64,000 nt of DNA from Macrostomum lignano. Its lineage: Eukaryota. The translations under genes and the position numbers were made by a program. The notes under the pieces are model-generated. The model worked only from the letters and a program-made list of their open reading frames with translations. It was not told the DNA's origin and searched no databases. The stretch covers positions 62,001 through 126,000 of the forward strand of contig NIVC01000667.1 of assembly GCA_002269645.1 (NCBI GenBank). Direction: 5' to 3'. Shown here piece by piece: positions 3,971-6,066 of the stretch (position 1 is the first letter of the stretch; each line of letters opens with the position of its first letter).

Positions 3971-4781
3971 TCAGCTGAGCGAACTGCTGGGCACACAGTA
4001 GGCCCAGTACACAATGTTAAACAAGCCAAACAAGCCCGGATAGAGGAACAAGCAGATGAAGTCCAGTCTCGATGGTGTCAATCTCCAATTAGACTTCTTC
4101 CGTTTGAACAATTTAGCCAATGTCTCCCGAAGAATGGAGTCTTGCTGCAGCAATACCTGTTGTTGCAGTTGCTGCTGCTGCTGCTGCTGTTGCTGCTGCT
4201 GTTGCTGCTGCTGCTGATGCAACTGCGGCAACTGCTGTTGCTGACTTCCCAGAAGCAGCGGCACATCCCTCGAAGCCGCTCTGGATCTCTTGGCCGCCAG
4301 AGCCTGCAGTTGTTTCCTTCGTCTCTCCTTCCTAATTCGCAACAGATTAATGACCATGTACTCCAGCAGGGACAGGTAGACGAACACGATGCAGCCGATG
4401 TGCCAGATCCCCAGCGTGGTCACATAGGACACTCTGGGCAGTTTGGACTCCAGAGCCAGGCTCTAGGTAATCTGAGCCAAGAAGCAGACAGTCGACAAGG
4501 ACACCCTTGCTGGTGGTGATTTATGATCAATAGCGAACGAGGACCAAGCCGCAAGGACAATGAAGGTCGACGGTAGATAGTTGTACAGTATGTAGTAGGA
4601 GTGCTTCCTCTTTAGCTTCTGAGTAGGCGTTGCCGCTGTCGAATGTCACCACGGGCGCGAAGAACTGGCTCAGCGAGGACGAGTCCTTGATTGACATGCT
4701 CTGATCGGCGAAGTGATCTGACCAGCTCAGCACCTGGTCTCCTGTGTGCATTTCAAATACACTGATGTCCATGTCGCATGC
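3971..4781 (-). pseudogene. Frameshifted proximal duplicate of Cys-loop channel exon 2
   Basis: Near-identical to 1461..2306 but lacks the 41 nt equivalent to 2101..2141 (3-nt AGC microhomology at the break), giving [12 protein letters not shown]...RY*. The polyQ tract is 2 codons longer. Confidence 0.8.
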
Positions 4782-4809
4782 CTGAAAATGATGGGGTCGA
4801 ATGTCTGCT

Positions 4810-5429
4810 GTCTTAGTGTCTTAGTGTCTGTCTGTCTGTCTGTCTGTCTGACTGTCTGTCTGTCTGTCTTAGTGTATGTCTGTCTGTCTGTCTGTCTGAC
4901 TGTCTGTCTGTCTCTTCGTCTGTCTGTCTGTCTGTCTGTCTGTCTGTCTGTCTGTCTGTCTGTCTTAGTGTCTGTCTGTCTGTCTGTCTGTCTGTCTGTC
5001 TGTCTGTCTTTCTGTCTGTCTGTCTGTCTGTCTGTCTGTCTTAGTGTCTGTCTGTCTGTCTGTCTGCCTGTCTGTCTGTCTGTCTTAGTGTCTGTCTGTC
5101 TGTCTGTCTGTCTGTCTGTCTGTCTGTCTGTCTTAGTGTCTGTCTGTCTGTCTGTCTTAGTGTCTGTCTGTCTGTCTGTCTGTCTGTCTTTCTGTCTGTC
5201 TGTCTGTCTGTCTGTCTGTCTGTCTGTCTGTCTGTCTGTCTGTCTGTCTGTCTGTCTGTCTGTCTGTCTGTCTGTCTGTCTGTCTGTCTGTCTGTCTGTC
5301 TGTCTGTCTGTCTTTCTGTCCGTCTGTCTGTCTGTCTGTCTGTCTGTCTGTCTGTCTGTCTGTCTGTCTGTCTTTCTGTCCGTCTGTCTGTCTGTCTGTC
5401 TGTCTGTCTGTCTGTCTGTCTGTCTGTCT
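4810..5429. repeat. (CTGT)n microsatellite forming most of the channel gene 1 intron (4782..5457)
   Basis: Direct inspection. Confidence 0.95.
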
Positions 5430-5457
5430 TCAATCCCGACACCCAAAAGTCGCACAC

Positions 5458-6066
5458 CTGAGTGTCGAAGGGAAAACGGCGGACATCCATGTGACAGTGG
5501 AAGCGCAGGTTGAGCTTCTGGTTGTACTGCAGGGTGCCGTTGGGCCACAGCCACAACAGGAAGTTCCTGGACGGCAGGTCGTGTCTGAGAACGTCTTTGG
5601 CATTCTTAAAGAACACGCCGGGCTTCCAGACGGACTCGGCGATCTGGCTGAGCACGAGGACAGCGGAGTGACCGGTGTAGCGCAGCCTGGGATCCGTCCA
5701 TCGCATCAGCAGCACCAGCTCTATGGCGAACTCCATGTTGATCATGTTCACCGGACCGAAGCTGTCAATCTTCAGGCTCACCTGCACCCGAGTCGGGCCG
5801 CCATCAGGCTGCGGAACCGGACGAAACAGGTTGTCATAGCGACGAGGATTGACCAGTTGGCTGACGAAATCCGTCAGGCTCATGTTGCCGAGTTTGTGCA
5901 ACGGCTGCTGCCGATGCGACTCCGGAGCCGCCGACGGTTGCCAGGTAGTTGCTATGGGAGTCGACCATGTTGATTCCGAGCCACCCTGAGCAGCATGAAC
6001 TGCTGTCAGAAACTTTGAAGTGTTGATTAAGAGGAGCAGCAGTGAGTATTGAAGTTTTGAAGACAT
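5458..6066 (-). CDS. Cys-loop (pentameric) ligand-gated ion channel, exon 1: signal peptide and N-terminal ligand-binding domain
   Basis: ATG at 6066 (the ORF track starts at an upstream GTG). Signal peptide [16 protein letters not shown]; motifs YDNLFRP, WTDPRL, WKPGVFF, NGTLQY and Cys-loop [13 protein letters not shown]. Phase-0 donor CAG|GTGTGC at 5458/5457; 609 nt = 203 codons. Confidence 0.88.

Follow-up and report, generated by a model that had tools for sequence, protein, structure and literature searches.

Few intron gains in animals are mechanistically readable, and the footprints that survive at intron ends help to choose among models in which the new intron arises by duplication, by break repair or from a transposon. 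Introners and other transposon-derived introns are inserted with a target-site duplication, the target supplying bases of the splice sites. Tandem-duplication (Rogers-type) introns use a CAG/GT proto-splice site (a slash marks the splice boundary throughout); the start of the intron repeats the start of the downstream exon, the end of the intron repeats the end of the upstream exon, and splicing restores the mRNA. The neo-introns of Daphnia pulex, which are attributed to the repair of staggered double-strand breaks, carry exon-derived direct repeats of 4-12 bp (PMC4202315). Among the pentameric ligand-gated ion channels (pLGICs) of lophotrochozoans, retrogenes of mollusc nicotinic acetylcholine receptors (nAChRs) carry either no intron at all or a single one at a novel site, which has been read as a gain after retroposition (PMC6896357). 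Here we describe a candidate from the flatworm Macrostomum lignano, referred to as channel gene 1, which lies on the minus strand of a stretch of 64,000 nucleotides (assembly GCA_002269645.1, contig NIVC01000667.1, positions 62,001 to 126,000; this whole stretch is called the window, and all coordinates of gene 1 and its surroundings are counted from its first letter). Its intron is at a non-canonical site and has a short direct repeat at its two ends. The pattern "intronless or one novel intron" is already described for pLGICs of spiralian molluscs (PMC6896357), and the intron of gene 1 would be a further example of this pattern, itself unproven.

Judged from its sequence, gene 1 is an anion-type pentameric (Cys-loop) ligand-gated channel. 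It matches Pfam Neur_chan_LBD (8e-32) and Neur_chan_memb (2e-25), both over the gathering scores, its spliced product has a C-x13-C loop with the FPxDxQ motif, and it is classed as anion-type because a P-A-R motif precedes M2 (SPPARVSLS, found in both of the 3' exons, 2A and 2B, that are described below). Exon 1 (5458-6066, minus strand) is an uninterrupted open reading frame (ORF) of 203 codons from the ATG to FPFDTQ with the match to Neur_chan_LBD; it codes for a signal peptide and the ligand-binding domain as far as the Cys-loop and ends in phase 0 with the codons TTT CCC TTC GAC ACT CAG. The intron that follows (4782-5457, minus strand, 676 nt) consists of a unique 5' piece of 31 nt, a (CAGA)n array and a unique 3' piece of 45 nt. 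Its first bases are GTGTGCGAC (5457-5449), in a longer version GTGTGCGACTTTTGGGTGTCGGGATTGAAGA, and its last bases are TTCGACCCCATCATTTTCAG (4801-4782), in a longer version CACTAAGACACTAAGACAGCAGACATTCGACCCCATCATTTTCAG. The exon after it opens with GCATGCGAC (4781-4773), which is read GCA TGC GAC ATG... and translated ACDMDISV. The array, which includes CACTAAGA and AAGA variant units, is found by Tandem Repeats Finder (TRF) as (CAGA)151 at 4825-5429 on the minus strand (period 4, 151 copies, 89% matches) and makes up 605 of the 676 nt (89%), in agreement with the first-pass annotation of this DNA, which had described the rest of the intron as (CAGA)n. The splice signals look usable: the donor CAG/GTGTGC agrees with CAG/GTRAGT at 7 of 9 positions, and on the acceptor side there are a pyrimidine tract CCCCATCATTTT (10/12) and branch-like CTAAG motifs with the A at -32. 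The exact C-x13-C spacing is obtained only with splicing at FPFDTQ/ACDMD.

The two ends of this intron resemble each other, and all the strings that had been reported at donor and acceptor are present, on the minus strand, at the positions given for them. The donor-side copy of the repeat (5449-5469) is made up of TTCGACACTCAG, the last bases of exon 1 (5469-5458), followed across the boundary by GTGTGCGAC; the acceptor-side copy (4773-4801) is TTCGACCCCATCATTTTCAG followed by GCATGCGAC. This acceptor-side copy belongs to a proximal unit A, and an identical one is found in a distal unit B (2298-2326). In register across the junction the repeat CAGGnnTGCGAC is identical at 10 of 12 positions, and at 11 of 13 when the preceding T is included (TCAGGTGTGCGAC versus TCAGGCATGCGAC). 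TTCGAC occurs at both intron ends, 3 nt upstream of CAG on the donor side and 11 nt upstream on the acceptor side. Bases from the ends of the exons are thus repeated at the intron's opposite end, namely TTCGAC...CAG at the 3' end and G..TGCGAC at the 5' end. Reading through from exon 1 into the intron gives VCDFWVSG where the spliced exon gives ACDMDISV, and, as had been noticed, each of the two peptides closes the C-x13-C loop. The additional claim that both are like strand beta-7 holds for one of them: with a beta7 profile built from 155 post-Cys segments of the family, the real exon is within the top 1% of random translations (P = 0.009), whereas the read-through peptide is average (P = 0.38). 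Past TGCGAC there is no nucleotide homology between the intron and exon 2; comparison of the intron ends with the exons, by three nucleotide scoring schemes and by the peptide profile, gave no extended similarity. The unique intron piece of 22 nt cannot be aligned to exon 2, and more than 3000 of 5000 shuffles score equally well.

The direct repeat is probably real, though short, and exceeds chance moderately. TTCGAC and TGCGAC, both of which contain CpG, occur 8 and 10 times per strand, respectively, in the 64 kb. Among random pairs of CAGGT and CAGG sites of the window the in-register hexamer is shared at a frequency of 9e-4 and the upstream one at about 0.04, the two together at 5e-4; it should be noted that this null is inflated by same-family repeats of the window. 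In the channel family D follows the second Cys in 9 of 183 loops, and V, which the intronic GTG encodes, is tolerated at the Q-x-C position, with 13 cases in 183. Since D after the second Cys is uncommon in the family, the intronic TGCGAC copies a gene-specific feature.

The position of the intron is not that of any intron in the relatives compared. The neighbouring paralogue on the plus strand (20395-26728, about 20.4-26.7 kb), also an anionic Cys-loop channel, is a multi-exon gene with at least six introns; its Cys-loop is encoded by an exon of 83 nt (22500-22582), with introns before (K)LSMTLAC and after MMFES. In three gastropod relatives that were found by profile search (Elysia, Littorina and Lymnaea) the corresponding exon is again 19+45+19 = 83 nt long and the loop is uninterrupted. 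A homologue from the trematode Paragonimus kellicotti (L001, positions 3001-4635) is a complete anionic channel of 544 amino acids in a single ORF of 1,635 nt, from which it follows that intronless pLGIC genes exist in parasitic flatworms too. Gene 1 has neither of the introns that border the 83-nt exon and none of the other family introns: exon 1 and the 3' exon are one ORF each, and at every canonical intron site of the neighbouring paralogue, at least six in number, exon 1 or exon 2B reads on without a break. That gene 1 is without the introns of its neighbour had been noted in the first-pass annotation. Its own intron is inside the Cys-loop, between FPFDTQ and xC, in phase 0, 58 nt into the equivalent of the 83-nt exon; the canonical downstream site is 25 nt further on and differs in phase. 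This site is unused in five of five comparators (the paralogue of the window, three gastropods and the trematode), all of which are homologues and none a true orthologue, and a lineage-specific gain of the intron is therefore plausible from the sequences compared. Intron sliding from the canonical position that follows the 83-nt exon was considered and rejected, the distance being 25 nt, the phase another one and all other canonical introns being gone.

Gene 1 itself has few near relatives. Its protein contains a poly-Q tract, and a homologue search with this tract included was swamped and gave 3 matches; the search without it returned the M. lignano gene model and one remote sequence, which characterizes gene 1 as very divergent. 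With anionic ligand-gated channels of many phyla its identity is about 30-35%, and there is no close orthologue in the libraries searched. HMMER matches that appeared to form a closer tier (P0004-P0010) were rejected as orthologues, being multi-domain fusion models. The intronless trematode gene was also rejected as an orthologue: with 27-28% identity it is no closer to gene 1 than are the intron-bearing molluscan genes (29-34%), and its intronless state is therefore probably independent. Among database entries the one close relative is a gene model of M. lignano in UniProt (P0001), which has long identical stretches in common with gene 1; frameshift-like artefacts that stem from an older assembly break them up. 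The model joins FPFDTQ/ACDMDISV and carries 2B-type sequence. Gene 1 is that of a flatworm and not of an insect; by calling the neighbouring gene GluCl-like, the first-pass annotation had implicitly read it as insect-like.

How does gene 1 compare with the described systems? As in the canonical anionic Cys-loop receptor genes (GABA-A/Gly/GluCl-like), there are a ligand-binding domain, a C-x13-C loop, four transmembrane segments (TM1-TM4) and a PAR motif, but those genes have the 83-nt Cys-loop exon and the family introns where gene 1 has one other intron only. With Rogers-type introns it shares the CAG/GT proto-splice site, the reciprocal repetition of exon ends at the intron ends and the restoration of the mRNA by splicing. 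In gene 1, however, the repeat is at most 21 nt long with an indel, the acceptor copy reads AG/GC and the satellite body is unlike the exons, while the intron length, which under the Rogers model should equal one duplication unit, is to 89% that of an expandable microsatellite; of the homology to the exons that Rogers-type ends should show beyond the splice consensus, only TGCGAC and TTCGAC are found. With the Daphnia neo-introns it has in common the exon-terminal repeat at the opposite intron end, a filler without clear source and a site that is otherwise intron-free, whereas its repeat of up to 21 nt is in two blocks and its body is a 600-nt microsatellite. Introners resemble the event proposed for gene 1 in that the target is duplicated at insertion. 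Here, in contrast, there are no terminal inverted repeats and no recognisable element, and of the many near-identical copies expected of introners the 64-kb window holds none apart from the generic (CAGA)n. The mollusc nAChR retrogenes are, like gene 1, spiralian Cys-loop genes from which the conserved introns are absent and which have a single intron at a novel position. They differ in that they are cationic and are described with neither mechanism nor footprint, whereas gene 1 is of the anion type, is from a flatworm and may have been retroposed, as its missing introns suggest. As is expected of a processed retrogene, it lacks all the canonical introns of the neighbouring paralogue; neither a parent gene nor a poly(A) relic nor a target-site duplication has been identified, and the 3' end of gene 1 runs into (GA)n.

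The 3' part of the gene is present twice. Two tandem units, a distal one at 1-2382 and a proximal one at 2854-4857, each contain an acceptor, a 3' exon, a (GA)n array and a 3' flank. The proximal exon 2A (3971-4781, minus strand), which adjoins the intron, is disabled as seen from its ORF and by comparison of the copies: a frameshifting deletion of 41 nt, with its junction at about 4617/4616, has taken out the conserved beta10 motif, and at 4465-4463 in M2 a CAG is replaced by an in-frame TAG. The product of exon 1 plus exon 2A would be truncated at 287 amino acids. The distal exon 2B (1461-2306, minus strand, match to Pfam Neur_chan_memb) is intact, with 281 codons and a stop, and codes for beta7-beta10 and TM1-TM4 with the PAR motif. 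The two acceptors lie 2,475 nt from each other, in regions that are identical for 80 nt or more. Between exons 2A and 2B there are four transitions, which are clustered, as well as the 41-nt deletion and a (CAG)2 indel, the 3' flanks being about 99% identical; the transitions are all within 75 nt, three of them synonymous, one nonsense and none missense. A clustering of this kind resembles a conversion tract or a diverged allele. The idea that the 41-nt gap is a mini-intron kept in 2B was rejected, as the segment starts with CG, is 41 nt long and codes for the conserved beta10 motif.

As exon 2A is dead, the functional mRNA would have to join exon 1 to exon 2B. The effective intron would then be 3,151 nt long (5457-2307), with a pseudo-exon inside, and the product would have 484 amino acids and keep each of the 17 columns that are invariant in an alignment of 30 family sequences. 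The single-intron model with which the first-pass annotation had worked is therefore incomplete, as it continued into the adjoining dead exon, the intact twin being at 2306-1461. The acceptor nearest to exon 1 opens into the dead exon, and automatic models are therefore wrong unless they reach the distal twin. Alternatively, exon 1 plus exon 2A might possibly yield a secreted protein of 287 amino acids that is a ligand-binding domain only.

The arrays around the two units bear on how the twin was made (all on the minus strand; delimited by TRF, copy comparison or array map). The 3' region of unit A (3153-3950) consists of (GA)n (3622-3950) and 3' flank (3153-3621). In unit B the 3' region (1-1440) contains the 3' flank at 1-468, which is cut by the window edge, and (GA)n from 469 to about 1440; the (GA)n of the distal unit exceeds that of the proximal unit by about 680 nt. 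At the duplication junction (2809-3006) a unit of 97 nt, made up of a unique GC-rich element of 65 nt and a short (CAGA)7-8 run, is present twice and leads into the unit B array, which TRF finds upstream of exon 2B as (CAGA)126 (2350-2853). This array is a hybrid: the approximately 75 nt next to the acceptor equal those of unit A, whereas the distal part has seven CACA variants, which are absent from the array near exon 1, and abuts the 65-nt element that belongs to the 3' flank of unit A. The twin has one of two sources, an unequal exchange between (CAGA)n arrays or an assembly mis-join, and both predict the hybrid array.

From these data an origin of the intron can be proposed, which we consider about as likely to be right as wrong: a phase-0 intron gained by a short target duplication, followed by a tandem duplication of the 3' part. 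Gene 1 would have lost, or would never have had, the canonical family introns. The ancestral target would have read ...TTC GAC ACT CAG/GTG TGC GAC..., the expected intron-free site being TTCGACACTCAGGTNTGCGAC. An insertion or repair event at this target would have duplicated at most 21 nt, and the AG/GT of the target copies would have provided the splice sites, the left copy the donor and the right copy the acceptor. The intron body would be common genomic (CAGA)n satellite, inserted or expanded afterwards. The acceptor-side copy would later have gained its pyrimidine tract, with GTG changing to GCA. Subsequently the (CAGA)n of the intron would have exchanged unequally with another sense-oriented array of (CAGA)n, located 3' of the gene, and acceptor, 3' exon and 3' flank would thereby have been duplicated in tandem, whereupon the proximal copy 2A would have died. 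Since a duplication of 21 nt is too short to be an intron by itself, insertion or repair with a short target duplication fits best.

Several points weigh against this origin. The repeat is at most 21 nt long and is broken by an 8-nt indel, and yet 21 nt is longer than the 4-12 nt of the Daphnia break-repair repeats. The donor copy reads CAG/GT and the acceptor copy AG/GC (CAG/GC), for which a later change from T to C is needed. The unique intron ends (31 nt and 45 nt) have no second copy within the 64-kb window, where accordingly neither the source of the inserted DNA nor any trace of a mobile element is seen. The comparators for presence and absence of the intron are a paralogue and distant homologues, with no Macrostomum orthologue or homeologue among them; outside the window the junction FPFDTQ/ACDMD is supported by one database gene model (P0001) alone; the 2A/2B duplication might stem from a mis-join of the assembly through (CAGA)n; and a register-free local-alignment shuffle reaches the observed score in 182 of 5000 cases, which is marginal. 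This last test also speaks for the view that chance and splice-site consensus explain the similarity of the ends, the intron, whether gained or old, having arisen by an unrelated route and TGCGAC and TTCGAC being uninformative. CAGG is expected at both junctions anyway, an upstream hexamer is shared by about 4-5% of random site pairs, the repeat is a post hoc pick from a reading of 64 kb, and extended homology is absent. Nevertheless, the in-register CpG hexamer is expected at about 1.5e-4 from the window counts or 9e-4 under the repeat-inflated null, the joint pattern at no more than 5e-4, and the intronic hexamer reproduces the D after Cys that is present in 5% of the family; coincidence is therefore considered unlikely, if still a serious contender. 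It could also be thought that there is no functional intron at all, gene 1 being a decaying or mis-assembled pseudogene in which (CAGA)n expanded or was inserted in coding sequence. The exon next to the satellite indeed has a frameshift and a stop, such satellites saturate the genome, assembly redundancy is known (PMC5730564), and the junction is supported by genomic sequence and a database gene model. But the 203 codons of exon 1 and the 281 codons of exon 2B are open, the 17 invariant columns and C-x13-C are kept only with this splice, the satellite region has a pyrimidine tract, a CAG and a branch-like motif at its 3' end, the junction is used by an independent gene model, and the changes between 2A and 2B are three synonymous and one nonsense with no missense, all of which makes a pseudogene very improbable.

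A Rogers-type origin, which is close to what the first-pass annotation had in mind, would mean that the intron was made in one step when a larger coding segment with AGGT in it, possibly that from the Cys-loop to the 3' end, was duplicated in tandem; the upstream copy would have decayed and been replaced by (CAGA)n, and 2A/2B would be a second round. As predicted, the 5' end of the intron resembles the start of exon 2 and its 3' end the end of exon 1; the locus does duplicate its 3' half in tandem with the proximal copy decaying; (CAGA)n directly precedes the acceptor-side TTCGAC, as expected from a unit that ended in the downstream array; and there are experimental and natural precedents (PMC3265369, PMC4974935). 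The homology, however, ends after TGCGAC, the 22-nt piece being unalignable to exon 2, the read-through peptide is not beta7-like (P = 0.38 versus 0.009), the S/S codons differ (TCG versus AGT), the upstream repeat is collinear only via the 8-nt indel, and the proximal copy must have been erased almost totally with 21 nt spared. A footprint of at most 21 nt without wider homology is better explained by a short target duplication, and we regard a segmental origin as improbable. Of the earlier proposal, intron gain by internal duplication, there remain the non-canonical site and a short repeat containing AG/GT; the segmental duplication finds nothing homologous beyond 21 nt, and its later inflation by a microsatellite has no positive evidence at the intron ends. 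A serial version would have the sense-oriented (CAGA)n arrays drive duplication of the 3' part repeatedly, the proximal copy each time decaying into intron while splicing to the distal copy keeps the protein; the 21-nt repeat would be the scar of the first round and 2A/2B the second round, the intron growing from 0.7 to 3.2 kb. Because the 2A/2B duplication shows that the locus is capable of such events, this version stays alive, with a low probability.

The short target duplication is directly testable in M. lignano, for which homeologous copies from a recent genome duplication and public RNA-seq are at hand; assemblies of the sister species M. cliftonense and M. hystrix exist (PMC10468722). 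The (CAGA)n arrays should be thought of in two ways, as they are able to mediate real duplications and to mislead assemblers. If the serial version were true and general, in microsatellite-rich genomes such as that of M. lignano introns would arise and lengthen by a recurrent route of a distinct kind. The genome has about 15% simple or tandem repeats, about five introns per gene and a mean intron length of 1.1-1.4 kb, and in the assembly Mlig_3_7, which has much redundant sequence, duplicated blocks with an identity of at least 95% add up to 180 Mb (PMC5730564).

The window is rich in micro- and minisatellites, a landscape typical of M. lignano. Arrays of the (CAGA)n/CACTAAGA type and related 12-nt variants are found at 14.0-14.8 kb, 16.1-18.9 kb and 26.8-27.5 kb; the satellite thus belongs to a dispersed genomic family and is not specific to gene 1. 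The introns of the neighbouring paralogue are packed with minisatellites, and behind its last exon there is a sense-oriented (CAGA)n array (about 26.84-27.49 kb), as in gene 1. About 370 nt upstream of the start codon of gene 1 a 15-nt minisatellite, AGGGACTCAGACCCA, is present in 15 copies with 99% identity (6437-6660). A TATAAAAG motif at 6114-6121 on the minus strand, 48-55 nt upstream of the ATG, may be part of a core promoter, as far as can be told from the sequence alone.

Several genes of the window have long single exons. A single-exon ORF of 404 amino acids on the plus strand (7638-8852), with a (GATA)n array directly upstream (about 7140-7330), has several hydrophobic segments and no Pfam match and is possibly a divergent membrane protein similar to G-protein-coupled receptors. 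On the minus strand, the ORF at 30862-31419 matches Pfam MMADHC (methylmalonic aciduria/homocystinuria type D protein, E = 4e-32) and is probably the C-terminal exon of this conserved gene. Two further minus-strand genes are rich in poly-Q and poly-P, a single ORF for a C2H2 zinc-finger protein of 383 amino acids (58394-59545) and a single ORF of 951 amino acids (46193-49048) with a sub-threshold zf-met match near its C-terminus (20.2 versus a cut-off of 21.2 bits). An AT-rich block at 50000-54000 (GC 0.30-0.34) lies between GC-rich sequence at 44-48 kb and 54-56 kb (0.55-0.58).

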